Of a stretch of DNA of 64,000 nt, positions 12,225 through 62,544 are shown in pieces. The notes under the pieces are model-generated. The model was given only the letters and a program-made list of their open reading frames with translations. It searched no databases and had not been told where the DNA came from. The translations under genes were made by a program, and so were the position numbers. Within the stretch, counting starts at the first letter, position 1; each line of letters starts with the position of its first letter. Where the stretch lies: the NCBI GenBank assembly GCA_002269645.1, contig NIVC01000356.1:496001-560000 (forward strand), read 5' to 3'. The stretch comes from Macrostomum lignano (taxonomy: Eukaryota).

Positions 12225-12746
12225 TCCCTCAGTGAGTCAGTGTGTACACTCTACCCTCCCGAACCCCTATTGTCTCCAAGAAACCATTCAGCACAATTAC
12301 ATGTTCTTCGTGTATAATGTTCAAGTTTCGTAAAGGATTTTTTATTGTTAATCAGTGATCAGGTGGTGCTACAATATTCGCAAATTTAAATTAAGTCTTA
12401 CTGTATTAATTCAATATCGTATATTGTAATGATCTTTTACCCTCTCGTTCACCTTCGACTTTGAATATTTATTATAGTCATTACATCATTCTAGCTTTCT
12501 AGATTCTTCTAGATTCTAGATTTTTCATTTGCCTGGCTGCAGACTTGCGCTTTCTCGACATATTTATGAATAAAAAAATATGTAGGCTAGAGTTGGATTA
12601 AAGCTGCTAATTATTGCACTTTGGTTTCAGGGTGATTTGCTGGGTGCGCATAAAAACTATGAAACCAGCTTTTGCTGCTTATACAGACTTTGCTTCGCAT
12701 TTCAGTCATCAGTGAATAATTTAGCTGATTGCAATTAAAGAAAGCA

Positions 12747-29672: not shown

Positions 29673-30350
29673 TTTGTTGCGTAGGAAAATTCTGGATTGA
29701 TATATATAAGTCTCGCATTTGAGTTGCCAGCCGTTTAGGAGGAGATCCGCGTTAAACCCGGCCGGTCGATCGATCGATCGGTCCGCTCAGCTTTAGATAT
29801 AAGATGGACATTCATTCATTCAAGCATACAAACCTTAGAGATTTAGTATATTTAGATTTAGCTCCATGTTCAGACGGCATTGCCATGGAATTTCCGTGGA
29901 AACTCCTTTCTGGTCATAAAAAGAAACGATCGTGGCCAGAGTCGTCACAGCCACATCCTTTACGAAATGAGAGAGAAAGCATGACTCTCCATTTCAACGA
30001 ATATTTGTACTTCGAAGTAACATGCCAAAAGCTTAACTCTCACTTTTTCATGACGTCAATATTCTGAGATTAACGTCGGTCAATCTTTGAATTTTTGTTA
30101 TTCTTAGTATCACTGATGCTAGCTTTAGCTGCTGTCCAATAAAAATTTCCCTAGGCAAGGTAAACTCTGAATATGTTCTAAAAATAGATTGCGCGCACTC
30201 GCTGTACAGAATTCCTCAGTTCCATGTTTGCCAAATACAAGAATGGAATTGCCGTGGAATTCCCTTGGCTCTGAATAAATAGCTCGTATAACCAAGAAAT
30301 AGCTTAAGTTTCCTGTTATTTTCGTTCACGTTAGATTTTTGAACAAGGCA

Positions 30351-32283: not shown

Positions 32284-32574
32284 AGTACGAGCTACAACGT
32301 AGAGTTTTGCTAAAAGAAAAACTTTGCTTATGGTCCTAAGGAATTAATGTACATACTTGAACTAATTTTGTAAGTATGTAAGTACTCCGTATGTAAGTGT
32401 GTTGTGAATAGAGCCAGTGAAATATTGTGTATTTTTTCCGAAATTTCTATCATTTATTGCGATCATGTTATTTGAAAAGTGTTTTGCCGCTTTCTAAAGT
32501 CTTTGATAACCTTGTAGAATTCTAGCGTGTCTAGCATGTGGGATTCTGGTTCTTGGGGGTTTCAATGAAAAAAT

Positions 32575-39116: not shown

Positions 39117-42100
39117 ATGGTGCGGTCTTTGCTAGTGACCTAATTACAGTAACAATGTAACTCAGCCTTGACAAATCAATGTCCGTGTTTATGTAAAGCA
39201 TCCGTGAGAGTGTTCGTTAGCTCAGGGTTCAGCTTTAATGAGCTTGACTGCCTGCCTGCCTGCCTCATTGCTGCCTGTCTATATTTTTTATTAGAGGCAG
39301 GGGTTGTGTGCACCCTGGCGCACTTTAAGCGACATTGTCACACAACCGACGAGAGGCATTGCTGCCCATTCCGCCGACTCCCCTGAGCAGGCACACAAGC
39401 GCGCGGATACGTACGCAGTCATACGCACAGGCACACACTCACACAGGAGTGTACAACGGCCCCTGACTTTATTTTATCGTTAGGCATGTACACTTCACTG
39501 CGCCTTTGGGGGTTGGCTCTCAAGGGTGTTAATTGCACCAGCAGAGCCAAGCCGAGCAGCCAATTGATCCCAAAATTAATGCGACTGCACTTGGAATCGA
39601 GCCTGGGCCGCTGGCAAACCAGAGCGCCGCGCCAGACCACTGGGCTACGACAGCCCTCCTTAGCTACACATCGACATGCTGCGAACTCAATACTACCGTC
39701 ACCGTTGTATTGCACGTCTCTCTTTTGCTCAGGAAACCGCAAAATACAGGCTGCAATCCGCAGCAGCAACAACAGCAAAAGCAGCAGCACCAGCAGCAGC
39801 ATCAACAGCAAAAGCAGCAACAGGTGACGCGAATTGTTAGCACGATTACGGAACAGGTGAAGGACATCTCCATCATTCAGACGTTGAGTCACAGTGTGCA
39901 GCAGCAGCACCAAAAGAAGCAACAAGAGCAGCAACTGGAGCAGGAGGCGTCTCGGCAGGAGCAGCGGCGGAACTCCGAAGATGTGCAACCGCCGCTGTCT
40001 CTGAACGAGACTCTGCGGGACGAGGCTCTGCGATTCATGCTCACTTCATCTCTGCGCGGCCTGGCGCGGATCCCGAGGGCGCGGGACAACGTCTGGCGCC
40101 GGGTCTGGATTGTCACCTTCACCCTCATGCTGCTGGTGTCGGCCGCCTTCTTCACTGTGCTGATGCAGCGGTACCTCATGTACGAGAGCTTCATGCAGAC
40201 CATCAGCCTGGTGAGGGACATTCACTTCTGCTGGCTGCCAACTGTGAAGTAAAAACAATCGCAAATGGCGGAGCCCACTGAGAGGTGCTCTTACTGAGAG
40301 CAGCGCTTACTGAGAGGGGCTCTTACTGAGAGGGGCGCTTACTGAGAGGGGCTCTTACTGAGAGGGACTCTTACTGAGAGGGGCGCTTACTTAGAGCGGT
40401 GCTTACTGAGACTGGCGCTTACTGAGAGCGGCGCTTACTGAGAGGTGCGCTTACTGAGAGGGGCGCTTACTGTGGGGGGCTCTTACTGAGAGGGGCGCTT
40501 ACTGAGAGGGGCGCGCGCTTACTAAGAGGTGCGCTTACTGAGAGGTGCGCTTACTGAGAGCGGCGCTTACTGAGAGATGCGCTTACTAAGAGAGGCGCTT
40601 ACTGAGAGGGGCGCGCGCTTACTAAGAGGTGCGCTTACTGAGAGGTGCGCTTACTGAGAGCGGCGCTTACTGAGAGATGCGCTTACGAGAGGCGCTTACT
40701 GAGAGGTGCGGTTACTAAGAGCGGCGCTTACTGAAAAAGGGCGCTTACCGAGACAGGCGCTTACTAAGAGAGACGCACGCTTACTGGGAGGGCGCTCCTG
40801 GGAGAGGGCGCTTACTGAAAGTGGGCGCTTACAATAAAGAGCGCTTACGGGGGCGCTTACTGAGAGGGGCCCAACTCGAACCCTCCGTCTTTGGCCATTC
40901 AGACTGCTCCCAGCCTGGCCTTCCCGGACGTGACCCTGTGCAATCTGCAGCCTATCCCGCTGAGGCAGCTGCGCCAGCTCGAGCTCGGCCAGCTGCACGC
41001 GCACTTCCGCCTGTCGCCGCACGCCTGGTCGCAGCTGCTGGACAGCCGGCACCAGCAGTTCAACCTCACCGATCAGCTCAGCAGTCACGTGGCCTCCATG
41101 CCGGGCTACTTCGCCAACCTGCCAGCGAATCTCAGCAACTACCTGGGCTTCGACAGCGGGCAGCTGCTGGTGAAGGAGCTCTGCCACTTTCGCAACACCA
41201 AGGGCCGGATATTCAGCTGCTCGGAGGCTCAGGTGTCCACCGTGCGGGACAGCCGCTACTTCAAGTGCTACAGGATCACCTTCCACGGCGCTCTGGCTGC
41301 CGAGGTGCAGAGCCTGCACGTGCTGGCCTTCTTGGACTATCGGGAGGCCGGGCGCTGCGAGAACTGCATGCTGGAGAGCCTGCAGACCACCGAGCAGGGG
41401 CTGGCGGTGGATGTGCAGGTGCAGGGCTACCAGCCTATGCTGCAGGACTGCCGGGTGAACAAGCTGCAGCCGGGCACCATCAACCACCTGGTCTACAGGT
41501 GAGCTGGATCCAGTTATCTGCTGACACTATAGTGGTCACACTGCTGACACAGTATTGAGCACACTGCTGACACAGTATTGATCCCACTGCTGACACAGTA
41601 TTGAGCACACTGCTGACACAGTATTGATCCCACTGCTGACACAGTATTGAGCACACTGCTGACACAGTATTGATCCCACTGCTGACACAGTATTGATTCC
41701 ACTGCTGACACAGTATTGATCCCACTGCTGACACAGTATTGATCCCACTGCTGACACAGTATTGAGCACACTGCTGAGTGCTGACACAGTATTGATCCCA
41801 CTGCTGACACAATATTGATCACAACTGCTGAGTGCTGACACAGTATTGATCACACTGCTGATAAGTATTGATCACACTGCTGATAAGTATTGATCCCACT
41901 GCTGACACAATATTGATCCCACTGCTGACTACTTTGATCCCACAAGAATGATCACAGAAGAATGATCACACGAAATAGATCACACAGAATGATCACACAG
42001 AATGATCACACAGGATGATCACATAATAATGATCACACAAAAATGATCACACAGGATGATCACACAGAATGATCACACAAGAATGATCACAGAAGAATGA

Positions 42101-44619: not shown

Positions 44620-46957
44620 TCAGGCGTTGTCAATAAAAAACTTGGCCAGCGTGTCGCGAGCGTCCAGGATTTTCTCCATCTGCTTGGCGTCGTTGCGGTC
44701 GCCGCGGGCGGCACAGAATCCGTGCGAGACGCCGTCGTAGCGTCGGTGAACGCAGCGACTGTAGAACGGCTGGTCGCGCAGCTCCTCCAGCAGCTTCTGC
44801 ATGTCCGGGTCGTCACTGGCCGGCAGCAGGGCGATGGGCATCTGGGCAGGGCGGTTTTTATAAACTAAAGTTGCATGCAGCTGTGCGGAATTTCATTACT
44901 ACATGGTCATTTTTAGTTCGTAAATGCCAGCACATTTCCTTCATCTGCCCGTCTCTCCTCCCTTCCCCCCTCTCTCCTCCCTTCTCCCCCATCTCTCCTC
45001 CCTTCTCCCCTCTCTCCTCCCTTCTCCCCTCTCTCCTCCCTTCTCCCGTCTCTCCTCCCTTCTCCCCCATCTCTCCTCCCTTCTCCCCTCTCTCCTTCCT
45101 TCTCTCCTCTCTCCTCCCTTCTCCCCTCTCTCCTCCCTTCTCCCCCGTCTTTCCTCCCTTCTCCCCTCTCTCCTCCCTTCTCCCCGTCTCTCCTCCCTTC
45201 TCCCCCGTCTCTCCTCCCTTCTCCTCTCTCTCCTCCCTTCTCCCCCGTCTCTCCTCTCTTCTCCCTCGTCTCTCCTCCCTTCTCCCCGTCTCTCCTCTCT
45301 TCTCCCCCGTCTCTCCTCTCTTCTCCCCCGTCTCTCCTCTCTTCTCCCCCATCTCTCCTCTCTTCTCCCCCGTCTCTCCTCCCTTCTCCCTTTCCCTCTC
45401 CCCAGCCGCTCACCCGCACAGCCCTGACAAGGTCAGCAGTTAGAAAGGCCGGATGCGCGGAGGCGGCGCAGGCGAAAGGCGAAGCGGCAGCGGCTGCCAG
45501 CAGCATAGCCGGCTTGGCGCCCCAGCAGAAGCCCAGCAGAGCCAGCTTGGCGCTCGGGTTGATTCGCTGCTTCAACAGCGGCACCGTCTGGTCCAGGATT
45601 GCCTTCACGGCCTTGTCAGCGTTAGCCGTTGTTGACAGCCAGTTGCCGAATTCGGTCTTGTCAGGGGGCGGGAATCTGCGGCCGGATGGGGATCACCCAA
45701 GGTTGAACAGATGATTCCCAAGGTTGAACAGGTGATTCCCAAGGTTGAACAGATGATTCCCAAGGTTGAACAGGTGATTCCCAAGGTTGAACAGGTGATT
45801 CCCAAGGTTGAACAGGTGATTCCCAAGATTGAACAGATGATTCCCAAGGTTGAACAGATGATTCCCAAGGTTGAACAGGTGATTCCCAAGGTTGAACAGG
45901 TGATTCCCAAGGTTGAACAGGTGATTCCCAAGATTGAACAGATGATTCCCAAGGTTGAACAGATGATTCCCAAGGTTGAACAGGTGATTCCCAAGGTTGA
46001 ACAGATGATTCCCAAGGTTGAACAGGTGATTCCCAAGGTTGAACAGGTGATTCCCAAGGTTGAACAGGTGATTCCCAAGGTTGAACAGGTGATTCCCAAG
46101 ATTGAACAGATGATTCCCAAGGTTGAACAGATGATTCCCAAGGTTGAACATGTGATTCCCAAGGTTGAACAGGTGATTCCCAAGGTTGAACAGGTGATTC
46201 CCAAGGTTGAACAGGTGATTCCCAAGGTTGAACATGTGATTCCCAAGGTTGAACAGGTGATTCCCAAGGTTGAACAGGTGATTCCCAAGATTGAACAGAT
46301 GATTCCCAAGGTTGAACATGTGATTCCTAAGGTTGAACAGGTGATTCCCAAGGTTGAACAGGTGATTCCCAAGGTTGAACATGTGATTCCCAAGGTTGAA
46401 CAGGTGATTCCCAAGGTTGAACAGGTGATTCCCAATGAAGAACAGGTGATTCTCAAGGTTGAACAGGTGCTTCTCAGGGTTGAACAGGATTCCGCAAGGT
46501 TGAACAGATGATTCCCAAGGTTGAAAAGGTGATTCCCAAGATTGAACAGGTGATTCCCAAGGCTCCCAAGAGCTCCGCACCTGGCCAAGCTCCAGGCCTC
46601 TCCGCCGTGGAACAGGTCCGGCATGACCACAGTGGCCTCGGCCTTAGCCGCCAGGTCATCGGCAAACTGGCGAGTCTGGCCAATGTCCAGCCCAAAGATG
46701 TCGTGAATGAGCACCAGACCGCGGCCTTTGCCGCTGCCAGTGATGTAGTTTCTCACTCCGCTGTCGGTGACAATGGAGCCGGAGCCGCTGTTCGAGTTGT
46801 TGCTAGGGGAACCGCTGGAGCAGCAGACCTCGGTGGCCATAGCGTTGCTCAGGCAGATTTTTCGTGTAAATAATAAGACACGCTGAGATACTACTGGCAG
46901 TAGTTTACTAGTAGCGACGGCTGGCGCTTTGAAGAGAATTGAAGTTAATATTCGCAT
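44620..46957 (-). CDS. Dienelactone hydrolase family (CMBL/AIM2-like) alpha/beta hydrolase, 286 aa, 3 exons
   Basis: Exons 46957-46581, 45675-45414 and 44841-44620. Motifs LIHDIFG, PDLF, GFCWG (nucleophilic Cys), AHP, D and HGF. An alternative start ATG lies at 46840. Confidence 0.9.
44945..45400. repeat. CT-rich intronic minisatellite
   Basis: Variants of CTCTCCTCCCTTCTCCCC(GT) filling the last DLH intron. Confidence 0.9.
45692..46565. repeat. 21-bp intronic minisatellite
   Basis: Unit GATTCCCAAGGTTGAACAGGT, about 41 copies. Confidence 0.95.
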
Positions 46958-47019
46958 GAATGCATGGCCACTACATGTACATGCATACAGATGCGGATAT
47001 CCCTCACTGAGAATCTGAG

Positions 47020-47400
47020 AATCTAGAGAGGCTGACCCAGCAACTTAGGATCTGAGAGGCTGGCCCAGCAACTGAGGATCTGAGAGGCTGGCCCAGCAAC
47101 TTAGAATCTGAGAGGCTGGCCCAGCAACTGAGGATCTGAGAGGCTGTCCCAGCAACTGAGGATCTGAGAGGCTGGCCCAGCAACTGAGAATCTGAAGGCT
47201 GACCCAGCAACTGAGGATCTGGGAGGCTGGAATAGCAACTGAGGATCTGGGAGGCTGGCCCAGCAACTGAGGATCTGGGAGGCTGGAATAGCAACTGAGG
47301 ATCTGGGAGGCTGGCCCAGCAACTGAGGATCTGGGAGGCTGGAATAGCAACTGAGGATCTGGGAGGCTGGCCCAACAACTGAGAACCTGGAAAGCTGGCG
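47020..47400. repeat. 28-bp minisatellite
   Basis: Unit GAGGCTGGCCCAGCAACTGAGGATCTG(A/G). Confidence 0.9.
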
Positions 47401-47699
47401 GTGACCCAGCTTGAAGAACTTAAGGCCAGTAGATTAACCAGAAAGTCTTCACCAGAGAAAGTAATGCAGACAGCTCAGTAAGAGAAGAATAAGCGGCTGA
47501 ATTATCGGGTACTAAATAAACTCAACACATTTTTCATCATATATTTGTAAGATGCAATTTGAACAATTCGAGATACCAGCAAACAAAAATAGACATGAAA
47601 AATTGCATCGGTGAACATCTGTCTAAATAAATAGACAGATTATAAAGTCTGTTTGAGAACTTTGAGGTCTTGGCTAGGACAATTAACTTAGAATTTTAA

Positions 47700-48005
47700 C
47701 GTAGGACGAGGGGCTGGTCAGGCTGAATGTACATTATCGGGAACGAGGGGTTGGTCAGGCTGAATGTACATTATCGGGGACGAGGGGTTGGTCAGGCTGA
47801 ATGTACATTATCGGGTACGAGGGGTTGGTCAGGCTGAATGTACACTATCGGGGACGAGGGGTTGGTCAGGCTGAATGTACATTATCGGGGACGAGGGGTC
47901 GGTCAGGCTGAATGTACATTATCGGGGGCGAGGGGTTGGTCAGGCTGAATGTACATTATCGGGGACGAGGGGTCGGTGAGGCTGAATGTACATTATCGGG
48001 ACGAG
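47700..48005. repeat. 37-bp minisatellite
   Basis: Unit TGAATGTACATTATCGGGGACGAGGGGTTGGTCAGGC. Confidence 0.9.
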
Positions 48006-48212
48006 GTGTTTTTTAAACAGATTTTTCACCTGAAGTATATTTTCTTAGACTGCAAATATTCAAGAATTGAAAAAGTTGCAATACTTGATCTCACATCATA
48101 CATTAGCGATTATAAAACACGAAAACAAACTAACAGTACAATTAGAATTTACCTAACTATCCATATATATGGCGAGTGAACAGTCATGCATATACAATGC
48201 TTATTAAACTAG

Positions 48213-49883
48213 CTAGCTACCGCCCTGTTGCTGCCCAGCTCGCTGCACAGTGGACTGCGGCGCCAGAGCGTGCTTCAGCCGCTGCCTCATCCAGGCCTTG
48301 GTCTCGTCTCGGGACGGCTTCGGCACCAACGGCAGAAAGGTTGCTATGCCGTTGTCAACCAGATCGGAGTTGGGCACGGTAGACAAATGGCGATAATTGG
48401 CTCTCACGTAGCGGACTAGCAGGTTCAGGCCTTCGGCGTCCACGTTGGGCGAGCCGTGGCAAACCTGGGGGGGGGGGGGTGAGAGCGCAATAGGGAAGCC
48501 TTGGGTGCGAACTCAGCTACTGAATAAGACTCAGCTGCTGAATGAGACTCAGCTGCTGAATGAGACTCAGCTGCTGAATGAGACTCAGCTGCTGAATGAG
48601 ACTCAGCTGCTGAATGAGACTCAGCTGCTGAATGAGACTCAGACACTCAATCAGACTCAACAGCTACTCAATGAGAATCAACAGCTACTCAATGAGAATC
48701 AACAGCTACTCAATGAGAATCAACAGCTACTCAATGAGAATCAACAGCTACTCAATGAGAATCAACAGCTACTCAATGAGAATCAACAGCTACTCAATGA
48801 GAATCAACAGCTACTCAATGAGAATCAACAGCTACTCAATGAGAATCAACAGCTACTCAATGAGAATCAACAGCTACTCAATGAGAATCAACAAACTACT
48901 CAATGAGAATCAACAGCTACTCAATGAGAATCATCAAACTACTCAATGAGAATCAACAGCTACTCAATGAGAATCAACAGCTACTCAATGAGAATCAACA
49001 AACTACTCAATGAGAATCAACAGCTACTCAATGAGAATCAACAGCTACTCAATGAGAATCAACAAACTACTCAATGAGAATCAACAGCTACTCAATGAGA
49101 ATCAACAAACTACTCAATGAGAATCAACAGCTACTCAATGAGAATCAACAGCTACTCAATGAGAATCAACAAACTACTCAATGAGAATCAACAGCTACTC
49201 AATGAGAATCAACAAACTACTCAATGAGAATCAACAGCTACTCAATGAGAATCAACAAACTACTCAATGAGAATCAACAGCTACTCAATGAAACCGAGCT
49301 CGCTAAAAGTCAGAGCACCCACCTGTTTCCACAGCACCTCAGCCAGAGCCATATCAGTATCTGTATAGGCCAGTTTGTACAGAAAGTTGACATGCTGAAA
49401 CTGATTAAACAGCTGCCCGGCAGTTCGAATTTTCGTAGACACGGTGGGGAAGTCGTGCAGTCGTTGGCGAATGTCTGCGTGAAACAGGCGGCCCATGCCG
49501 TAGAGCACATAGGTAGTGGGATAGTCGATATCAACCGAACCCTTGGACACGGTCTGCTCGCAGATTGCCCGCAGTCTTTGCATAACAAGCCAAAGGTGCA
49601 GCGAGGTGACGCCATGCCAGGTGGCAAAAGAGTCGTCCAGGCCCAGTCTAGCAATCCACTCGCCGCTGTGATCGGGATACTCGGCGCAGACGCAGTACAA
49701 ACTTTTGGCCACCTTCAAATATGGATCCCGACGCCAGCCTACAACACAGCGCAGATTGAGCAGCTGCTTCTTGACTAGCTGGGTGAATGGCAGCGCCTGG
49801 TAGACCTTCGTTTTGGGCTTGCTGGCCAGGCCGCGCCGGCAGCCAATCAGATAAGCCGGCGCCGCTGCCGCAGCCAATCTGGG
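48213..49883 (-). CDS. UQCC1: Ubiquinol-cytochrome c reductase complex assembly factor 1 (Cbp3 family), about 270 aa; 5' end unresolved
   Basis: Exons 49883-49323 and 48464-48213 (phase 0). DDSFATW..LHLWLVMQRL and LAEVLWKQ..LNLLVRYVR..L match UQCC1/Cbp3. The N-terminus PRLAAAAAPAYLIGCRRGLAS resembles a mitochondrial presequence. Confidence 0.85.
48515..49290. repeat. Compound intronic minisatellite (18-bp unit, then 21-bp unit)
   Basis: ACTCAGCTGCTGAATGAG, followed by ACTCAATGAGAATCAACAGCT. Confidence 0.95.
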
Positions 49884-49929
49884 CTGGAGGAAAATCCTTG
49901 GCGCCGACAGCGGGTAAAAAAGCAATTTT

Positions 49930-51865
49930 CAATGTACATTGGGGTAAGAGAGTGAGCGGGAGACATTGTACATTCATGTTGAAGTTGGTGTTGTGGTTGT
50001 GGAGGGAATGTACATTGGGGTAAGAGAGTGAGCGGGAGACATTGTACATTCATGTTGAAGTTGGTGTTGTGGTTGTGGAGGGAATGTACATTGGGGTAAG
50101 AGAGTGAGCGGGAGACACTGTACATTCATGAAGTTGATTGTGGGAAGAGAATGTACATTGGGGTAAGAGAGTGAACGGGAGACACGTAAAGTCATGAAGT
50201 TTGTTGTGGGGAGAATGTACATTGGGGTAAGAGAGTGAGCGGAAGACACTGTACATTCATGAAGTTGATTGTGGGGAGAGAATGTACATTGGGGTAAGAG
50301 AGTGAACGGGAGACACGTAAAGTCATGAAGTTTGTTGCAGGGAGAATGTACATTGGGGTAAGAGAGTGAGCGGGAGACACTGTACATTCATGAAGTTGGT
50401 TGTGGGGAGAGAATATACATTGGAGTAGGAGAGTGAGCGGGAGACACTGTACATTCATGAAGTTGATTGTGGGGAGAGAATGTACATTGGGGTAAGAGAG
50501 TGAATGGGAGACACTGCACATCAAGAGGTTGGTATTTTGGAGAATGTACATTGGGATGGGGTGAGTGAGCGGGAGACACTGTGTATCAAGGAGGTTGGTA
50601 TTTTGGAGAATGTACATTGGGATGGGGTGAGTGAGCGGGAGACACTGTGTATCAAGGAGGTTGGTATTTTGGAGAATGTACATTGGGATTGGGGTAAGTG
50701 AGCGGGAGACACTGTATATCAAGGAGGTTGGTATTTTGGAGAATGTACATTGGGATTGGGGTGAGTGAGCGGGAGACATTGTATACCAAGGAGGTTGGTA
50801 TTTTGGAGAATGTACACTGGGATTGGGGTGAGTGAGCGGGAGACACTGTATACCAAGGAGGTTGGTATTTTGGAGAATGTACATTGGGATTGGGGTGAGT
50901 GAGCGGGAGACACTGTATACCAAGGAGGTTGGTATTTTGGAGAATGTACACTGGGATTGGGGTGAGTGAGCGGGAGACACTGTGTATCAAGGAGGTTGGT
51001 ATTTTGGAGAATGTAAAATGGGATTGGGGTAAGTGAGCGGGAGACACTGTATACCAAGGAGGTTGGTATTTTGGAGAATGTACACTGGGATTGGGGTGAG
51101 TGAGCGGGAGACACTGTATACCAAGGAGGTTGGTATTTTGGAGAATGTACATTGGGATGGAGTGAGTGAGCGGGAGACACTGTATACCAAGGAGGTTGGT
51201 ATTTTGGAGAATGTACATTGGGATTGGGGTAAGTGAGCGGGAGACACTGTATATCAAGGAGGTTGGTATTTTGGAGAATGTACATTGGGATTGGGGTGAG
51301 TGAGCGGGAGACACTGTATATCAAGGAGGTTGGTATTTCGGAGAATGTTCATTGGGATTGGGGTGAGTGAGCGGGAGACACTGTATACCAAAGAGGTTGG
51401 TATTTTGGAGAATGTACATTGGGATTGGGGTGAGTGAGCGGGAGACACTGTATACCAAAGAGGTTGGTATTTTGGAGAATGTACACTGGGATTGGGGTGA
51501 GTGAGCGGGAGACACTGTATACCAAGGAGGTTGGTATTTCGGAGAATGTTCATTGGGATTGGGGTGAGTGAGCGGGAGACACTGTATACCAAAGAGGTTG
51601 GTATTTTGGAGAATGTACATTGGGATTGGGGTGAGTGAGCGGGAGACACTGTATACCAAAGAGGTTGGTATTTTGGAGAATGTACACTGGGATTGGGGTG
51701 AGTGAGCGGGAGACACTGTGTATCAAGGAGGTTGGTATTTTGGAGAATGTAAATTGGGATTGGGGTAAGTGAGCGGGAGACACTGTATACCAAGGAGGTT
51801 GGTATTTTGGAGAATGTACACTGGGATTGGGGTGAGTGAGCGGGAGACACTGTATACCAAGGAAG
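49930..51865. repeat. About 60-67-bp minisatellite between AFG1L and the UQCC1 coding exon
   Basis: 67-bp unit GGGAGACACTGTATACCAAGGAGGTTGGTATTTTGGAGAATGTACATTGGGATTGGGGTGAGTGAGC, grading into shorter variants toward 49930. Confidence 0.95.
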
Positions 51866-52182
51866 TTGGTTTTAAGATTTACCTATTAACTACTTATAAG
51901 CAAGAAGCAAGAAAAATCAAATAAAAAAATACGTAATTGCCATCTAAGAACAAAAAGTTCCAGATACACGTAAAATAAGAAACTGAGCGCCTGCAGTGTC
52001 AGGCCAAGGACAATGTGTACTTTATTTAATCCATTATACACAAAGGCAAACAAGTGAAGCATTGAAGCACCCAGTTTTCGCATTCAACTTGATGACAGAA
52101 GAAAAAGTTTTTCACTGAGCTCAGAGGTAGCAAATCTAGAATCTAATTTAAAGAGGCTAACATTGCATCAATCTTGTATGCC

Positions 52183-55100
52183 TCAGATGATAGCATCTCT
52201 AGCTGACACACTCCAGTACTGAGCTGACATCATCTCGGTCAGGCGGGACACAGTGCGCTCGTGAGCGAACACCTCCTCCTCGCCCGTGAAGATGGTCGCC
52301 CCCGCCGATTCAGCGTTGGGCCCGTGCTGAGACACGCCCAGATCGTCGCGAAGGACGCGCATCCGGTGCAGCTCGGCCTCGTCCAGCGAGTCGCCCGGCT
52401 GGAACAGGCTCTCGGGGGGCTCGGCCGCGCTTATTACTAGGCGGCACCTGGGGCAGCGGTGCGGGGTGATTGAGCGATTAAAGAATGCCTGGCCTATAGA
52501 TAATTATCATAGCTATAACCACCTGTAAGCAGTAAGCAAAGCGCCAAACTATAAAAGCGTCAAAATCCACTAAGCAGCAACAACAAACAACAAATTACGC
52601 TGCCCCACATGCAAAGTCACAGAGCAGGGTGGGTCAGATGGCGCGCCGCAGAGCCCGAGAGCGGACGAAGTCCGCCCCGTTGGCAGTGTCGGGCGCCCTA
52701 GCGTCGCGCAGGAGGCAGCCTATACGTATCGACGGGTTTGGGCCTGACCCCGGCTGAGCGGGCCCTGCAGGGTGAGCAGCAGAACGTCCTGAACAGATTG
52801 GGGGCAGTAGCCCTCGGCCCGGATCACGTGCCCCCCCCCCAGTTGAAGTCACCGCCGGCGCAAATTGGTGGACGGGCGCTGCAGCTTGGCCCCACTAAGC
52901 CCTACGCTATAAGAGCGCCAACATGTAATAAGCGCCAAAGTATAAAAGCGCCAAAATCTACAAAACGACACACCACAAAAGCGCTAAAATCTACTAAGCG
53001 CCAAAGTATAAATGCGCCAAAATCTGAAAAGCGCCACACAATAATAGTGCCAAAATCCACAAAGCGACACACCACAAAAGCGCCAAAATCTACAAAACGA
53101 CACACCACAAAAGCGCCAAAATCTACAAAACGACACCACAAAAGCGCCAAAATCTACAAAGTGAAACTAATCCTCACCTATTATCATAGATAGTATCTAT
53201 CAGGGTAATAAACCTCCGCATAGCGCTCCGGTTCTGCAGCGACAGCACTGGAACGCCGTGCAGAAACAGGCAGTGGAAGCGCTGGCACACGGCCACATAG
53301 TCGGCGGCCGCCAGCGGCTGGCAGCACAGCTGATCAAAGCTCGCCCACAGCAGGCCGCCTTTGCACTTGTCAAAGCTGACGTCTCGGCCAAACACGCGCA
53401 GACGGGTCGGCCCGGCCGGGCCCGCCTCGGCCGAGCACAATCGCTTCCAAAGCGTCTCCATGGCAACGCTAGAATCGGCATCGCCAGATAGAAAGTAGGT
53501 ACGCATGGAGCCGCTAGAGCCAGCAGAAGCGTCTTTGTCCCGGGCCAGTCTGCGATAATCCACCCCGGAGCCGAGTTCCACAATGCCGCAGTGCCGCTTC
53601 AGAATGGGTATGAATGGCAGGAAGTTCACCCGCTGAAGCCCGTTCTTGTACAGGTCGTCCGGGGCCCGGTTGGACGAGGCCACCAGCACCAGGCCGGAGG
53701 CGAACAGCACGGTGAACAGGCGTTTTAGAATCATCGCGTCGGCGATGTCCGTCACTTGGAATTCGTCCAGGCAGAGCAGGCGGGTCCGGCTGGCGATGTC
53801 GGCAGCCACTGGCCCGATGGGGTCGTAGGCGCCCTGCGGTGCATCACGGGCTGCGGCTGTATCTGGTCCTACGAGTCGTCACCCAACAGCGGCCCATATT
53901 GTAGGACCCTGGGGAACCAGCGGCCCACATTGTAGGACCCTGGGGAACCAGCGGCCCATATTGTAGGACCCTGGGGAACCAGCGGCCCACATTGTAGGAC
54001 CCTGGGGAACCAGCGGCCCATATTGTAGGACCCTGGGGAACCAGCGGCCCATATTGTAGGACCCTGGGGAACCAGCGGCCCACATTGTAGGACCCTGGGG
54101 AACCAGCGGCCCACATTGTAGGACCCTGGGGAACCAGCGGCCCATATTGTAGGACCCTGGGGAACCAGCGGCCCACATTGTAGGACCCTGGGGAACCAGC
54201 GGCCCATATTGTAGGACCCTGGGGAACCAGCGGCCCATATTGTAGGACCCTGGGGAACCAGCGGCCCATATTGTAGGACCCTGGGGAACCAGCGGCCTAT
54301 TGTAGGACCCTGGAGAACCAGCGGCCTATTGTAGGACCCTGGAGAACCAATCAAAGACCTTAGGGAGCCAGCGGCCCAACCCAATGAAGGATTCTGGAGC
54401 ACAGCGGCCCAACCCAATGAAGGATTCTGGAGCACAGCGGCCCAACCCAATAGAGGACCCTGGAGCACAGCGACCCAACCCAATAGAGGACCCTGGAGCA
54501 CAGCGGCCCAACCCAATAGAGGACCCTGGAGCACAGTGGCCCAACCCAATAGAGGACCCTGGAGCACAGCGGCCCAACCCAATGAAGGACCCTGGAGCAC
54601 AGCGGCCCAACCCAATGAAGGTCAGTTAGGAACCAGCAGTGGAAAGAAGCCAGGTCCTTTTAAACAGAAAATGCCAGCAATTTGTCACCTTAACAGACTT
54701 GTCCGCCTGCTTGAACCGATGAATCATCTGGTGCACTTCGGTCATGAATGCGTGGAAATGCAATCTACGCTTGGCAAGCACGGCAGAGCTTGGCTCGCCA
54801 GCAGAACCTGAACAGCAGTTGAAAAACAAGTCCATTAGCATGCTTTTGCCGCCGCCAACGCCGCCATAAATATAGAGGCCACGTGGACCAGCCAAACTTG
54901 GCTGCGAAGCTGGCTTGGCTGTCCATCGCTGCATCAGCCGCGACATCAAGCCGGCAGATCCGGCAGCTGCTGAAGATGCTGCTGCTGACGGTGCAGTCAG
55001 CAGATGACCGCTGGTCAGTAGTTCCGCGTGCAGACGGTCCAGATGTTCAAGCACCATCAGCTGATGCGAGTCCTGGCGCAGGTGGCCCTTGGCAACAAGA

Positions 55101-55219
55101 CTGGCATAGGCTGCTGTAGGTGCCAATTCATTACTAGCAGTAGTAGACGAACAGAATCTAATGAAAGCAGTGTTGCAGACTCTGCTTCTGCGACAAATGT
55201 GGCCAATCAAAGCTGGCAT
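52183..55219 (-). CDS. AFG1L: AFG1-like mitochondrial AAA+ ATPase (LACE1/ZapE family), 483 aa, 3 exons
   Basis: Exons 55219-54689, 53833-53178 and 52447-52183. Walker [24 protein letters not shown], Walker [30 protein letters not shown] and [16 protein letters not shown] at 52026-52021. Confidence 0.93.
52570..52900 (-). mobile_element. 5'-truncated, degenerate RTE-type non-LTR retrotransposon 3' end in an AFG1L intron
   Basis: Translates as [18 protein letters not shown].., resembling the RRL..GHV.R motif C-terminal to RTE-clade reverse transcriptases. It has a stop and a frameshift, then a TTG-rich tail. Confidence 0.55.
52915..53165. repeat. Degenerate about 32-bp intronic repeat
   Basis: Unit AAAGCGCCAAAATCTACAAAACGACACACCAC. 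Confidence 0.8.
53885..54625. repeat. Compound intronic minisatellite (related 31-bp and 33-bp units)
   Basis: GCGGCCCA(T/C)ATTGTAGGACCCTGGGGAACCA and GCGGCCCAACCCAATAGAGGACCCTGGAGCACA. Confidence 0.95.
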
Positions 55220-56099
55220 AGCAATTCTGCTTGCAAAAATATTTCGGGTAGTTTGAAGCCATAAATTTATAATATTTTATAGGAATTCTAAACGATTAAA
55301 TGTGCCAAAAAAGTAATATCTCAGTGATAAATATTTTTATGGCTCATATTCTATGGCTTCTATGGCTCATATTTTATTACATGTATTCAAGGCAAGCCAA
55401 TGCACAATCACTTAGATGCTATGCTTACTACAGTTCTGCCCTATCCATAACCAAAGTTTTCCCATATCTATATCTATAGCTATATCCCTATCCATAACCA
55501 AAGTTTTCCCATATCTATATCTATAGCTATATCCCTATCCATAACCAAAGTTTTCCCATATCTATATCTATAGTTAATAGTTAATTACATAGTTAATATC
55601 TATGTAATTAACATATCCCTATCCATAACCAAATTAGTTCCCAACCTCCATGACCAAGAATAACCAAGATTTGCTAGACTCTATATGAATGCATATGATT
55701 TGTATTAGTACTAACCTGTGTATAAAAGCTCTTAGAATGACAAATATTTTAGGCCCTAACATGTATTTTATAGCTAAATAAAAAAGAAATATGAATTCTC
55801 ATCTTTTTTATCATTTAAACACAACAAACATTTTACTTGATATTAGAACACAAACACAAAATTTAACTTATTATCATAATAGGGCCTAATATTTTATTTT
55901 AGAATGCACTTTATACTATTATTTTGATTTTTATATGTAGAGATAAAAGCCTTGCTTTGCCATACCTATTGTCTAAAAATAAACTAAAATAGGATAGATA
56001 TAAAAGTCAAATCATATTTATAATAAAAATATTATAGTGACTTATATTATTATTTTGTTTTAATATTGCAAAAAGTAATAATAGTAATAATAATATTAA

Positions 56100-56390
56100 T
56101 AATAATAATAATTGATTACAACTGCCCTAAATGGGTCAGATGTGCAATCAATAGCTTAGCTATAGCTATTGCATAGCACATCTGAAGGCTGCATATGGCT
56201 ATTTAGTCCAAGGACTAGAGGGTTGCCATATATATCCCAGCTACAGCTAATACCCATTTTAAAGCTGTGTGAACTAAAGCAATATAGTTAATTTGTTTTG
56301 CTCAAGGACACAAATTTTTCTAGGTGGGATCAAGAATTGACTTTCAAGTCACAAGTCTAATGCTCTATCCAGTAGGCTACAATCCCTGAC
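56100..56390 (-). mobile_element. CORE-like SINE family 2, heavily C-to-T/G-to-A mutated copy with a remnant tRNA-like head
   Basis: Aligns with 9190-10029 and 60205-60420; contains GTGTCCTTGAGCAAAAC on the minus strand. Confidence 0.7.
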
Positions 56391-56789
56391 AATATTACTA
56401 AACATAAATAAAATTGGCCTTATCATTAATATACAGCATAGGTTTAAACTAGGTTTACTTTTATAAAAAGCATATGTTGTAGTGTTACAATGGAAAAGCA
56501 AAATTTAATTATTAATATAACTAATTACATTTTAATAAAAAACTATATTAAAAAACTAGTTGTAATTAATTTTTTTCAACTTAGTTGCAACAATATGCTA
56601 TAAAAAGAAATCCAAAAATGAAAATGTGGTTTTTTGATGTGTTTTGCACACCAATGTGCATTGTCAGATGTATTGTTTGAAACCAAAGGTGTGAGTAAGG
56701 GAATTTATAAATTATTTGTCAATGAAACATATGTAGCTAGTGAGTAGGATTTTGTATGTACAGAGTAATAGGAGGTTGATAGTCCATAG

Positions 56790-57434
56790 TAGTGTTCCGC
56801 CATAGCTGTAGCTACGGCTACAGGATCCTATGGCAAATATGGTAAAATAGGTGCCTATGGCACCTATAGATATGCCTATGGTAGCTAGCTGCTCTTATGG
56901 CTACAACTACGGAAATATGGTAATTGCTGTTACATTCCATAGATTCCCATAGCTGTAGTTATTAATGTTAAAAATTGAAAAAATATTAGAAACAGGTAGA
57001 GTAAAACAAAGATACTTTTAGTAAACTGTATTATCAACCTAGAAACTTATATAATATACCTAAAAAAAGTACAATAAAACACTAGCAAACTCTAATTTTT
57101 ATTAATGTGAAAAAGTTTAGCATTAGTACTTTCAATAACGACTAAGTATTGTTGCTTTGAAAAAAGATGAAATATAATCTTACAAAGACAATTAAGTGTT
57201 TCTTTTATTTTCTAATTTAATTTGCAGTTGTTTAAGCACTAGGTTATCTTCTTGATTCAAAATATTTTGTTTTTTTAGACTTTTTGTTAAAACTATGGCT
57301 ACGGCTATGGGAACTATGGGAATATGGTAATTTTGGGGTCCCTATGGCTACAGAATACAGAGAATTATAGTAAGCCGTAGTTTTGCTTACGGCTACGGCT
57401 ATGGTACATGGACCCTCCTTTCGGTAGAACACTA
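56790..57434. mobile_element. 645-bp hAT-type MITE
   Basis: TIR TAGTGTTC(CG/TA)CC, 8-bp TSD GTCCATAG at 56782-56789 and 57435-57442, and subterminal CTA(C/T)GG repeats. Confidence 0.8.
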
Positions 57435-57812
57435 GTCCATAGGGCAGGGCGAAGACCAATAGGCAGAAAACAAAATATAATTGAATGAGCACTGGTTACA
57501 ACAACCAGTGATATGCTATAAAATATAGTAAAAATAGGCTTATAATATCTACTACTAATAGTGACTTCAATAATGAAGGTCCCATGATATGCTAATATGC
57601 ATGCAAAAGGCAAATGAAAAAAGCAATTGATATTTATCTAGTGACAGAATAAAAGGCAGTGGTTATTCTTTTAGTTACCAGACAAATAACCATTTTGTTA
57701 TTTATCCAGTTAAATTGCTAATACAAGTGTCTATATAGTGATAAATATTTTGAATTTTTAGGACCTTTTCTAAGTTTTCTTATATCCTAATTAATATTTT
57801 GTTATACTAATA

Positions 57813-58403
57813 CCAGGGTTAGGATTGTGTACCACTGTACGCCAGAATGAAAATTGCTTACGTAGCTCATGCATGCCAATGTATACCAACGAACTTTGTA
57901 TCGCATACAAAAATATGCCAAAATAAAAATTACAAATTACAACTAATATTAAAAGCTTGCAAAATTTTAATATTCAAACAACCTATATGTTAAAACTAAA
58001 AATCTTTTTTACTAAACTGTAGAGAACTAGTTCATTTTAACTATTTTTGTTTTACTTTTACTTTCTTGGAAAAGTTTCACCCAGTTTTTTAAATTTAGTC
58101 TTCCAATTTTTTTGTAAAGGGCCGGCTATTCTTTCTGATCAAAATTTAGCTACTGTAACTATGTACATGGAAACTATGCCAAATGCAAACTTAATCATTT
58201 TTGTATACTAATAATGCAGATTGATTGTTGGGACTCGGAACTTTTGGTCCCACCTGCTGGTCTTGGCAATCTCTATATGCCAAGCTATATACCAAGAGGG
58301 CACGCCAGGTGCCTTTGTATGCCAAGTTGTACATCAATGTGTAATTTAGGTCCCTCTGTACACCAGAAAATTCCGGCGTACATGTATACTATCCGGAGTC
58401 TGG
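57813..58403. mobile_element. 591-bp element with degenerate TIRs
   Basis: 8-bp direct repeat TACTAATA at 57805-57812 and 58404-58411; the ends share CCAG..GGAT.GT.TAC..TGTACGCC in inverted orientation. Confidence 0.55.
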
Positions 58404-60204
58404 TACTAATATAAGCAAAGCACATATATACAAAATTAGGCCTATACTTGTTTAACAAATTTCTTTCATGTTTGCAAAGAATTCAAGTGAAAAACTAATT
58501 GCAGTGTAAGATGTATACTACTAGTATAACAACATAATAATCAAGATTTAAAAAGTAATTTTTAAAGTCTTAAAACAGGGCCTATTGATCTATTTATTGT
58601 AAAAATTGATATAACTAATATTACCAATTTAATTAGACAAATAACAAAGGGCCATTCCATTTAACTATGGTCGTAACATGACAGACTATTTTTACTTATA
58701 AAATGGAATCTAATAATAGAATATACTAAACCAATATTTCGAATGAAAGATTATTTTGTCAAGAATATGTTTATAAAGTTTTATATAGATATCATCATTA
58801 GTATAGATGCTATTAAACCTGGAATGGCACTTATGGTCGTAACAGGATTTTTTACATATAGAAACTAAAAAGGTAAGAGTCTTATAACATTTTTCATTTT
58901 TGATATTTTGCAATAATTTTTTTAAATTTGACTAAGAACATCTTTAGAAGTCATACTCTTTTATTAGAATATATAAACTCAAAAAGGCAACAAAGATACA
59001 AAAGAAAAGGCAGCCTTATGGTCGTAACATTATGGTTGTAACATATTTTTTTCTGTCAATCAGTAACTTTGAAGTATTAATATATTAAAAATATAATAGA
59101 TTATATGGTTGCTAATGTTTTTTTATCTGATGATGCAAGTACTATAATTTTATATATAGTTTGTTTTAACCTTCTAAAGTTTTCTATTTGTTTTTAAAAG
59201 GTACATAAACTTAATGATGTCTTTTGCTTAGGAAATGTCCAATTTTTTTACAAAAAATAATTTTTTGCCAATTGATAATATGCTAGGCCTAATCCAACAT
59301 TTTATCTTTTATTTATTCTTAGATTGTTAGATTGTTAGATTCTTATTCTAAGTCTTGATTCTTAGACATACAAAAAAGATTTGGTAAAAAAATTGGCTGA
59401 TAAGGCAATGACAAGCAAAAATATTGACTTTTTTTCTATTTTCCAAATATGTCCATCTTATATGGAATGGGCCCAAAATGTCTATTTATCCAATATTAAC
59501 TAGACGAACTGTGAAATATGGCAATTTATCTAGTAATTGGATGAATAATCACATTGCTATTCATCAGTTTACCAGACAAATAAAAATTGCCTATGAAAAA
59601 AGTGAGTTTGTTGCAAATGAAAAAAACCAATGAGACAATATGGAAAAAAGCAAACTTAAAATAAAAAAATGCTAATATAAATTCTTTATATTGAAAATTT
59701 TTTTGAATTTAAATATATATCTGGTTTCTATCAAGAGGATGCCAAAATGTTTTGTAAGCTTATTATCTTCCTTATACAAAAGCAAAAAGTTAATTGAAAA
59801 TTAATATTCAAAAACAAGGTTTTATATTTAAACTAGAAAAAATGTCAGTTCTAACATCTAAGGTCATTAGAAAAAGCAAAGCCAATATTATAAACTTTTC
59901 CAATTATCAACCAGCTTTTTATATTAGGTGAACTCGAAATTCCTATAAATTTTTTCTAGGAAAATAAATAAAATGCATGCATTTTAAGCATAAGGCTAGG
60001 CCTAACTTTGCAGATAGTAGGCCTATTATAAAGGTTTTGGCTAGATGCTTATTCTGCATTTTCTGGTTTTATTAGATATATTCTTATGGGCAGATAAGAG
60101 ACAAGAAATGCAGGATTAGAAATAGATTAGTCAAGTAGCAAGAAGGCTTAGCAAGTAGTAGGCCTAGGCCCTGCAAATAGGCCTAGGCCTAGGCCTAGTC
60201 AATA

Positions 60205-60420
60205 ATAATAACTGATTACACTTGCCCTGGGCCTAAATGTGCTAGATGTGCAACCGACAACTCAGCTGCAACTATTGCGCAGCAAGTCTGAAGGCTGCGT
60301 ATGACTGTTTAGTCCAAGGACTGGGGGGTCGCCACACACACACCCTGACACCCTCAATTACCCTAGCTAATGCTGGTACCCATTTTACAACTGAGCTGGA
60401 TAAACTGAAGCAATGCAGAG
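60205..60420 (-). mobile_element. CORE-like SINE family 2, truncated and little-mutated copy
   Basis: Aligns with the reverse complement of 9215-9379 plus 9990-10029. Confidence 0.75.
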
Positions 60421-61428
60421 TATTTAACTTAAAATATTAAAAGAATGAAGACTTTATAACCCAACTGGCCCAACCCAGCCTTTTTACACAGTACCTGGTC
60501 ACTAACCCTTAGATTACTGTGGTCTGTAACTGTAAGGTCTTGGGAGGGGCGGGGGGCAGCATGCAGATCAGAGTATTCGTTTCCTAGAATTTTCAAGATC
60601 GATAAAACAGCACAAACTAACAAAATATTTTTCGCTGCCAAAGAATTAAATTCTATCAGCTGAATACTCAATATATAAATTGAATACTTAAATAAACCAT
60701 TATACATAGTGTTACATAATGCATTCTACTAGAAACTTTAGGCTGAGCTTGAGCTGACATTAATCCGTTTTTTCTACATTTCAATGCATTAATAATCATG
60801 ACATTGACATTAATGTTTGTAATTAACAACGAGTCCAACGACAGTTGTAAAGTTATACAGTTTTCGGAGTCAAAGATATTTTCCACTAATTGTTGACTAT
60901 CATATTCACTTCCCATTTAAAGTTGTCATCAGTAGCTGAATGTTTCTAATGAGTAATGACTAGATGTCGCTAAAAGAAATAACCAGAAAAATTACAATTC
61001 ATTTTAATGACAAGGCACAAGCCGCAGCCTGAAGAGGTCCGATAGACCATTCAAAAATGAGATCACAATGCGCGAAAAAACTCAGTTTTATTTCGATACA
61101 ATAATTGTATTGAGAACTTGCACAGCAGTTAATTGGCCTGCAAAAAAATTAAGATTTGGTAAGAAAGGCTCTCAAAAGTGCGGCTCCATCGACATAAATG
61201 AGACCCTTTTATACGGAAAGTAGATTTCGAAGCAAAATTAGCTACAATGATGATGACTAAGGTGGCGGCCAGCACAATTAGCGAATGGTTTATCCTCCGC
61301 TATAAAACAAAGCCTATAGTACTAGTTTTACAATATTCCTGTTTGACACAATAAAAACTCACTTAAGCGAAAAATAAATATTAATCCATTTGAAGGTACA
61401 TTGGGCAAAGGCAACAAAAAGTGTGAAT

Positions 61429-61842
61429 CACAGATACTTGAATAACTAGATGGGCCACTCAGCACATTTGCGTGTGAACTACTTTCAGTTCAGTAGTAAG
61501 TTAAACAGAAGCATTTTAATGTATTTTTAAAGCCAAGGCTCATTTATTGGCTCTTACCCCCAGCTTAAACCCTCCAATCGAGCCTTTAACACTACCCCCC
61601 CCCCCGCCACCCAATTTTTATTGCCTTTCAGTGGACTGGCTAATGTACATTATTGCTGAACCAATTAGCAAGCTGTTTACGCCTGCAAGCTTGGGCTTCT
61701 AAACTTATCAAAGTCATTTCAGCTGCCTTTATTTTTTATAAAATAGCTTATGTATTCTTCTTTGCTACTGAACTGAAAGTAGAAAGCCTTTTTACTAAGC
61801 ATATATGCCTGAGTGGCTGATCTAGTTATTCTAGTATCTGTG
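61429..61842. mobile_element. 414-bp MITE, inverted copy of 11808-12224
   Basis: Same TIR; 8-bp TSD GTGTGAAT at 61421-61428 and 61843-61850. Confidence 0.9.
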
Positions 61843-62544
61843 GTGTGAATTGAGCAAAATTAACAAGAGATATCCAAGTGCACTCGCGTGATAAATTTTA
61901 TACGAATAGAATAATCTCTTGACTAGCTGTTTTTTCTTAATAATACGACGCCACATCCGGAATGAATGAATCATCGAATTTAAATTCTAAGGTTTTTTGT
62001 AACAAAAAAATACGCTTGTAATTCGTGATAGCAGCACGCGAGTATTCGTAGCAATCTATTTTAGCAGTACACAAATATAAAGTAGAAATCTAAATGAATG
62101 AAAATTTACAGTTAGAAAACAGAATGTACACGCAAATTTAATTAATGTACCAGCTACTCATTGACTTGTATATTAACAAAACACACTTATTTCTACAACA
62201 TAATAACAGCTACTAGTTGAAAGACGGTGATTCGCACGGACGGAACCAAATTAAAGTAGATAAAAAATACAGACAAATACATGCCTTAGTTAGGTACACA
62301 TATTTACCTATGGCGATTGGCAACTGGAGTTATATTCAAAATTAAATTAAGTGCAAACAAACTCAGATGATTTATTTTTAGGTAGAGAAAGATCAGGGCA
62401 CCAAGAAGGTCCACGCTTCTACGGTAGTACCGTAAGACACTGAGGCAGTTAGTTTATCAAAGACTGTTCGGTCCTGCCTCCTGATATATAGTCTGGTTTT
62501 TAGTCTAATGTCAGGTAATTATACAAGATACCGATACCTACACG

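Follow-up and report, generated by a model that had tools for sequence, protein, structure and literature searches.

Do three neighbouring genes on the minus strand of the Macrostomum lignano genome make up one trans-spliced operon, and are their products all mitochondrial? The question is raised by a 64,000-nucleotide stretch (the window) of scaffold NIVC01000356.1 in the M. lignano assembly Mlig_3_7 (GCA_002269645.1), a region that the public GenBank annotation already covers. The three genes encode an AFG1-like ATPase (AFG1L), a homologue of the complex III assembly factor UQCC1/Cbp3 (UQCC1), and a member of the dienelactone hydrolase (DLH) family. A previous sequence-only reading of the window had proposed that they form a single functional unit. 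The analysis herein favors, with a probability of about 0.6, a smaller unit, in which the locus is a two-gene spliced leader (SL) operon, AFG1L-UQCC1, followed by a separately transcribed DLH-family gene.

Gene models and paralogous loci

Gene models were obtained by reading the minus strand and joining exons at GT-AG sites. Protein families were assigned by Pfam, and tandem repeats were located by Tandem Repeats Finder (TRF). The coding regions are as follows:

55219-52183, minus strand: AFG1L coding region, 483 amino acids; exons 55219-54689, 53833-53178, and 52447-52183
49883-48213, minus strand: UQCC1/Cbp3 homologue without a genomic start codon; exons 49883-49323 and 48464-48213
46840-44620, minus strand: DLH-family (AIM2-like) gene, 247 amino acids from MATEVCC; exons 46840-46581, 45675-45414, and 44841-44620

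The three genes are co-oriented, with clean GT-AG exon models that equal the NCBI proteins PAA84912.1 (AFG1L, BOX15_Mlig029659g1, an exact match), PAA84911.1 (UQCC1, BOX15_Mlig029659g2, annotated as 5'-partial), and PAA84910.1 (DLH, BOX15_Mlig020230g3) exactly, save for the 5'-partial starts. The agreement of exon models and Pfam matches confirms the three co-oriented minus-strand genes of the sequence-only reading.

AFG1L matches Pfam AFG1_ATPase (PF03969) with an E-value of 1.2e-87 and 294.7 bits against a cut-off of 27, covering profile positions 2-338 of 361. The model carries the Walker A P-loop GGVGGGKS, which places it among the AFG1-like ATPases, and the identity of the protein with animal AFG1L/N2B proteins is 43-46%. 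UQCC1 belongs to the UQCC1/Cbp3 family by its match to Ubiq_cyt_C_chap (PF03981; 2.4e-16, 60.5 bits, cut-off 21.5); its best matches beyond M. lignano are flatworm UQCC1 proteins, and named UQCC1 proteins of Hydra and Argonauta are also among the matches. DLH matches PF01738 (3.6e-16, 59.8 bits, cut-off 21) and has the N-terminal CC, the GFCWG nucleophile motif, and the HGF motif of the AIM2-like members of the family. C45, C46, G174, C176, G178, and H253-G254-F255 are invariant across 11 DLH sequences.

A search with the spliced UQCC1 model gave a UniRef protein of M. lignano at 99% identity, whose cluster includes three NCBI proteins of assembly GCA_002269645.1; the mention of Macrostomum in the sequence-only reading was thus correct. 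The window copy corresponds to locus L001 (NIVC01000356.1, 534213-555895), of which a 297-nucleotide aligned stretch that reaches from the upstream flank into AFG1L is identical to the minus strand of the window. It was compared with two paralogous M. lignano loci, L002 and L003, which are recent duplicates. The order AFG1L-UQCC1-DLH and the orientation are kept in all three loci, which adds little weight among recent duplicates, and the co-orientation of three genes alone is not significant (chance about 1 in 4). In the NCBI annotation, L001 has AFG1L, UQCC1, and DLH as its only genes, all on one strand. The plus-strand open reading frames (ORFs) between them are minisatellite translations only.

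Missing start codon of UQCC1

The UQCC1 frame is bounded upstream by a stop codon at 49931-49929, and its first in-frame ATG is found only at 49583. The alignment of UQCC1 with flatworm, cephalopod, cnidarian, and fungal homologues has 18 invariant columns; a start at 49583 would drop 7 invariant positions, C67 to W99. In all three genomic copies the gene is annotated as 5'-partial, with no ATG and no upstream exon.

A single 35-nucleotide spliced leader, CGGTCTCTTACTGCGAAGACTCAATTTATTGCATG, which ends in ATG, is used in M. lignano, where about 30% of the genes are trans-spliced and the enriched trans-acceptor motif is [T/C]TNCAG (PMC8629364). The 3' part of the leader is, for example, TCAATTTATTGCATG. 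Acceptors were scanned for with the motif [TC]TNCAG, and the following candidate lies directly before the first UQCC1 exon (slashes mark splice points):

49898-49884, minus strand: putative UQCC1 trans-splice acceptor region, with AAG/G at 49897/49896 and TTTTCCTCCAG/CCC (CTCCAG, 49889-49884) at 49884/49883; conserved in L002 and L003

The 2.3-kb gap between AFG1L and UQCC1 has just two [TC]TNCAG matches, and CTCCAG at 49889-49884 is one of them. When the leader is joined at 49883, its terminal AUG is in frame and a complete ORF of 271 amino acids is formed, starting with MPRLAAAAAPAYLIGCRRGLASKPK. The lack of an ATG, the 5'-partial annotation in three of three copies, the in-frame CTCCAG acceptor, and an annotated 5' end adjacent to AAG together point to UQCC1 as a predicted carrier of the spliced leader. 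The use of a flatworm leader's AUG as the initiator methionine is documented in Schistosoma mansoni, according to PMC9851317 and PMC12582326, which cite Cheng et al. 2006.

At the other end of the gene, the UQCC1 stop codon TAG reads TAT in L002 (12183-12185), and the protein is one residue longer there before the next stop.

Shared transcriptional-unit prefix and spacer of AFG1L and UQCC1

In the M. lignano genome paper, the term transcriptional units stands for assembled transcripts. These were grouped into clusters at 95% identity, and the members of a cluster received a common name prefix; the TBONE pipeline then cut the units into genes by SL and poly(A) read evidence (PMC5730564). AFG1L (Mlig029659g1) and UQCC1 (Mlig029659g2) lie on the same scaffold and have a common transcriptional-unit prefix, as does the L002 pair (Mlig001086, g1 and g2). 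Because the two genes share no sequence, the common prefix indicates one assembled transcript over both AFG1L and UQCC1.

The sequence between the two genes contains the following features:

52026-52021, minus strand: AATAAA, the AFG1L poly(A) signal, with an overlapping ATTAAA at 52030
51956-51944, minus strand: candidate acceptor TTTTTGTTCTTAG named in the sequence-only reading, about 70 nucleotides past AATAAA and followed by an ATG at 51943
51870-49931, minus strand: 67-bp intercistronic minisatellite of about 29 copies (TRF)

The AATAAA that had been assigned to AFG1L is present. From the AFG1L stop codon to UQCC1 there are no canonical poly(A) signals besides those at 52030 and 52026, and these two are conserved in L002 and L003. 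The 67-bp array measures 1940 nucleotides in the window, 239 in L002, and 525 in L003, and a motif scan of the minisatellite found neither a poly(A) signal nor a [TC]TNCAG motif.

Operons in M. lignano have been called where neighbouring genes share an orientation, the downstream gene is trans-spliced, and the spacer, adjusted for repeats, is <1 kb. The spacers have a mode near 100 bp; repeats inflate them, and it is there that assembled transcriptional units are prone to break (PMC8629364). The repeat-adjusted spacer was calculated as the raw length minus tandem repeats, with the AFG1L end set at the poly(A) signal plus 20 nucleotides. The raw distance from this point to the UQCC1 acceptor is 2117 nucleotides in the window, 442 in L002, and 699 in L003; after adjustment it is 177, 203, and 174 nucleotides, respectively, well within the <1 kb limit. 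The AFG1L-UQCC1 spacing fits the published operon mode. The earlier estimate of gaps of only a few hundred bases once minisatellites are set aside was borne out (177 nucleotides here and 575 before DLH).

A different minisatellite dominates each intron and each spacer of the three genes (window 44948-54621, and likewise in L002 and L003), with units of 18, 21, 28, 31, 33, 37, and 67 bp in the three-gene region. The copy number differs several-fold between the paralogous loci, and the length of the non-repeat spacer is constant within about 30 nucleotides.

The sequence-only reading had named a strong acceptor at about 51944. TTTTTGTTCTTAG was found there, and its use as the UQCC1 trans-splice site was rejected: it is a TAG site without a [TC]TNCAG match, and the annotated UQCC1 5' end is about 2 kb further downstream. 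The ATG at 51943 was also rejected as the UQCC1 start, as it opens an ORF of only 8 codons and reads ATT in L002. A cis-spliced first exon, ATGGCAATTAC/GT, can be joined in frame to AAG/G; it was dismissed on its non-consensus donor, the ATT in place of its ATG in L002, and its absence from every annotated copy. The acceptor-like site at 51944 was judged incidental.

DLH gene and its upstream region

The region between UQCC1 and the DLH coding sequence contains:

48212-46946, minus strand: UQCC1 3' region and spacer to DLH, with minisatellites at 48010-47704 (37-mer) and 47383-47015 (28-mer)
46957-46841, minus strand: presequence-like frame of 39 codons upstream of DLH, with ATG at 46957 and no counterpart in homologues

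DLH is named as its own transcriptional unit in all three loci (Mlig020230 g3 in the window, g1 in L002, and g2 in L003). The annotated 5' end of its mRNA is at 46945-46947, the identical position in L002, with no AG before it, and the first AUG of this mRNA is at 46840. Judged from the annotation alone, DLH does not carry the spliced leader, as its 5' end does not follow an AG and its first AUG is the start supported by homologues. The spacer at 48212-46946 contains no canonical AATAAA. The distance from the UQCC1 stop codon to the annotated DLH 5' end is 1267 nucleotides raw and, repeat-adjusted, 575 in the window, 596 in L002, and 586 in L003, all below 1 kb.

Ten DLH homologues of 239-247 amino acids, from Salpingoeca, Mucoromycota and Zoopagomycota fungi, and Logan/ENA/JGI contigs, start 4-9 residues before the invariant CC, in alignment with the ATG at 46840. 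The ATG at 46957 was considered as an alternative start that would give DLH a presequence, and it was rejected: the upstream frame has an in-frame TAA in L003 (AAA to TAA, about 13630-13733), the ATG lies upstream of the annotated mRNA start, and the homologues have no such extension. The upstream frame is probably 5' untranslated region or flank rather than coding sequence.

N-termini were compared by a crude count of basic and acidic residues within the first 30 residues, with no dedicated predictor. The sequence-only reading had described all three as presequence-like, and two of them fit. AFG1L has 4 basic and 0 acidic residues, and UQCC1 has 6 basic and 0 acidic residues when read from the leader methionine. 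The presequence of UQCC1 depends on an AUG from the spliced leader, as no in-frame ATG is encoded at that point of the genome. DLH, read from 46840, has 1 basic and 2 acidic residues and is off the pattern. With homologues that start at MATEVCC, and with the presequence-like frame broken in L003 and placed before the annotated mRNA, DLH is most likely a non-mitochondrial, cytosolic-like hydrolase of the AIM2 type. The proposal of a functionally coherent, three-gene mitochondrial unit is accordingly not supported.

The 5' end of AFG1L

The flank upstream of AFG1L is as follows:

55281-55234, minus strand: AFG1L 5' flank, with TATAAAAT at 55281-55274, TATAAAT at 55271-55265, and the annotated 5' end at 55234-55236

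The TATA-like motifs at 55281-55265 may be promoter elements of AFG1L or of the operon. Alignment with the window places the start of the L002 AFG1L coding sequence 1 nucleotide past AAATTTCAG/, a perfect acceptor motif that follows directly on the TATA-like motifs. Because the coding sequence starts 1 nucleotide after such a motif, the L002 copy of AFG1L may itself be trans-spliced.

The window reads TTTATG/G at 55262-55260, where L002 (6050-6053) has TTTCAG/G; the window copy lacks the acceptor and has a genomic ATG at the very position that the leader AUG would take. The window ATG and a leader AUG joined in L002 open the same upstream ORF, of 34 codons and overlapping with the start of AFG1L. 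In the window, the annotated AFG1L 5' end is 24 nucleotides further downstream than the spot of the lost acceptor.

Proposed expression of the locus

A single pre-mRNA for AFG1L and UQCC1, trans-splicing at 49883, and independent transcription of DLH are predicted. RNA polymerase II would start upstream of AFG1L, read through the AFG1L poly(A) site about 20 nucleotides past the AATAAA at 52026, and continue over the 67-bp minisatellite. The upstream AFG1L mRNA would then be cleaved and polyadenylated, and the downstream RNA would receive the 35-nucleotide leader at the acceptor just before UQCC1. The terminal AUG of the leader, joined at CTCCAG/CCC (49884/49883), would serve as the UQCC1 initiator methionine and open the presequence-like N-terminus MPRLAAAAAPAYLIGCRRGLASKPK. 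DLH would start at the ATG at 46840 of a transcript with its own 5' end at about 46945, and its product is predicted to be non-mitochondrial.

Alternative explanations

Several points weigh against this two-gene reading, the first of which concern the acceptor. The annotated UQCC1 5' end at 49895-49897 directly follows AAG, and the deposited coding sequence starts about 12-13 nucleotides upstream of the CAG. When the leader is joined at AAG/G (49896), its AUG is out of frame and the ORF is 83 amino acids long. The deposited UQCC1 5' end in L002 follows no AG, and the deposited 5' ends are 6 nucleotides apart between paralogs. The CAG site, the AAG site, or both may be used, and the placement at 49883 is a prediction from the sequence. 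A bolder version, in which UQCC1 is wholly dependent on the leader AUG and the choice between the two acceptors (13 nucleotides apart; 49896 off, 49883 on) switches on or off the production of a complex III assembly factor that is operon-linked to the quality-control ATPase AFG1L, is rather improbable.

The common prefix is an indirect argument for an operon. Genome-guided assemblers can fuse neighbours via read-through or multi-mapping repeat reads, and the L003 pair is split between two units, Mlig001086g4 and Mlig004120g1. UQCC1 could also be trans-spliced from its own promoter, as some 60% of the trans-spliced genes in M. lignano lie outside operons (PMC8629364). The genes would then be three independent neighbours with no operon among them, and the UQCC1 promoter and outron would be located in the AFG1L-UQCC1 spacer. 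This explanation draws on the mostly monocistronic nature of trans-spliced genes, on the raw spacer of 2.1 kb, on the divided L003 pair, and on the absence of AFG1L beside UQCC1 in two other flatworms. The 10 kb on either side of UQCC1 in Schistosoma mekongi contain no AFG1L or DLH by annotation and tblastn, and the 9.5-kb Cichlidogyrus contig with UQCC1 contains neither by the same searches. The synteny in other flatworms that the sequence-only reading had suggested as a check was thus not seen at these two UQCC1 loci, and the top 120 matches of the AFG1L homologue search include no flatworm besides M. lignano. However, the prefix is common to AFG1L and UQCC1 in two of the three loci, and only about 175-200 nucleotides of non-repeat sequence per copy leave little room for a promoter unless the minisatellite acts as one. 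Independent neighbours are considered unlikely, though the most probable of the alternatives to the AFG1L-UQCC1 operon.

A larger operon, with DLH also trans-spliced from the same pre-mRNA, was the original proposal of the sequence-only reading. Its AFG1L-UQCC1 part is supported by its fit to the published operon criteria, the common prefix, and the missing UQCC1 AUG; its DLH part is not. The adjusted UQCC1-DLH spacer (575-596 nucleotides, <1 kb) would allow operon membership if SL reads were found there, and the link may have been missed, since repeat-rich spacers are known places for transcriptional units to break. Gene order and orientation are shared by three of three paralogous loci, and a pyrimidine-rich TCTCAG/ lies about 50 nucleotides upstream of the DLH ATG, where a joined SL AUG would be in frame. 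However, the DLH prefix differs from that of the other two genes in three of three loci, the annotated 5' end shared by the window and L002 is not at an acceptor, and the non-minisatellite part of the 1 kb upstream of the DLH ATG has no [TC]TNCAG. DLH also has no presequence, so the argument from functional coherence fails. A three-gene operon is accordingly regarded as improbable.

Finally, it is very improbable that UQCC1 is not trans-spliced at all and starts from an unannotated upstream cis exon or a non-AUG codon: in-frame TTG and CTG codons do lie between the stop at 49929 and 49883, and the trans-splicing call was made from the sequence and the annotation, but all three copies are annotated 5'-partial without an upstream exon, the sole ATG-bearing candidate exon (51943) ends after 8 codons and is not conserved, and the acceptor context with its in-frame SL AUG is conserved.

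Other features of the window

All other window ORFs with a Pfam match are on the plus strand:

8593-9033, plus strand: Bap31-family ORF
12729-14735 and 30339-32283, plus strand: TRAF-type gene in two near-identical tandem copies, with RING, TRAF zinc finger, and MATH domain
18720-19418, plus strand: ankyrin-repeat ORF
40891-41502, plus strand: amiloride-sensitive sodium channel (ASC) fragment, convergent with DLH and outside the NCBI-called L001 genes

The two TRAF-type copies are about 17.6 kb apart, and in each a short proline-rich repeat separates the coiled-coil region from the MATH domain. A 5.8-kb array with a 24-nucleotide unit occupies 32531-38307, and one of its frames is open for >400 codons at a stretch (LPSCSIDS repeats); the portion inside L001 has no annotated gene. 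Upstream of AFG1L, the stretch 55300-62000 is AT-rich (27-37% GC), with no called gene in the portion inside L001; a 47-bp unit is perfectly repeated there, in about 2.9 copies, at 55439-55573. No copy of the SL RNA gene or leader was matched within 3 mismatches in the window, and an Rfam scan of the window gave no family at the gathering score.

Significance of the locus

The AFG1L-UQCC1 pair is most likely a routine instance of a known M. lignano feature, already implicit in the public annotation. A full-text literature search for four Mlig IDs returned 0 papers, and the pair is undiscussed in the papers found; the gene IDs and names were not found in the supplementary tables of PMC5816591, PMC8629364, and PMC12582326. 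The AFG1L, UQCC1, and DLH protein clusters contain NCBI and UniRef members only and no Logan transcript contigs. The pairing is neither conserved nor surprising: about 15% of M. lignano genes are in predicted operons (PMC8629364), and neither of the two parasitic flatworms that were checked showed the pairing. The finding has little import beyond annotation quality. Within that scope, an ORF without an ATG in a flatworm genome is a useful sequence-level hint of SL trans-splicing, and a presequence-like upstream frame can mislead localisation calls. The locus also illustrates that kilobase-scale minisatellites can sit in operon spacers with the underlying spacing of about 180 nucleotides unchanged. 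Two nuclear respiratory-chain biogenesis genes in one transcription unit are a plausible device for co-regulation.

Comparison with known systems

The trematode operon Op8, with cytochrome b-c1 complex subunit 7 alongside enolase (PMC12582326), is likewise a flatworm operon with a complex-III-related nuclear gene. However, the genes differ, the Op8 partner is functionally unrelated, and Op8 is conserved across trematodes, whereas the AFG1L-UQCC1 linkage was not seen in two neodermatan loci.

The SL2-type operons of C. elegans resemble the proposed arrangement in their polycistronic pre-mRNA, in the coupling of upstream 3'-end formation to downstream trans-splicing, and in spacers of about 100 nucleotides. 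They differ in that M. lignano has one leader, with no specialised SL2 and no defined equivalent of the Ur element, and tolerates kilobase-scale repeats in its spacers. C. elegans operons often hold nuclear genes for mitochondrial proteins.

In the flatworm leader system of Schistosoma mansoni, the SL AUG serves as the initiator, and the UQCC1 ORF is likewise complete and in frame only with the leader AUG at 49883. The initiator role is documented in S. mansoni, while it is predicted from sequence here, and the annotated UQCC1 5' end suggests a second, out-of-frame acceptor 13 nucleotides upstream.

The closest comparison is with the SL operons of M. lignano itself (Wudarski et al. 2017, PMC5730564; Ustyantsev and Berezikov 2021, PMC8629364), the same organism with the same single 35-nucleotide leader ending in ATG. 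The raw spacer of 2.1 kb is long solely through the 1.9-kb minisatellite. AFG1L and UQCC1 are co-oriented neighbours with the downstream gene at an acceptor-type site, and they would belong to the two-gene class, the commonest at 75% of operons (PMC8629364). Their repeat-inflated spacer, about 100-200 nucleotides without repeats, also follows the published pattern, and no difference in kind is seen between the AFG1L-UQCC1 pair and the operons already described.

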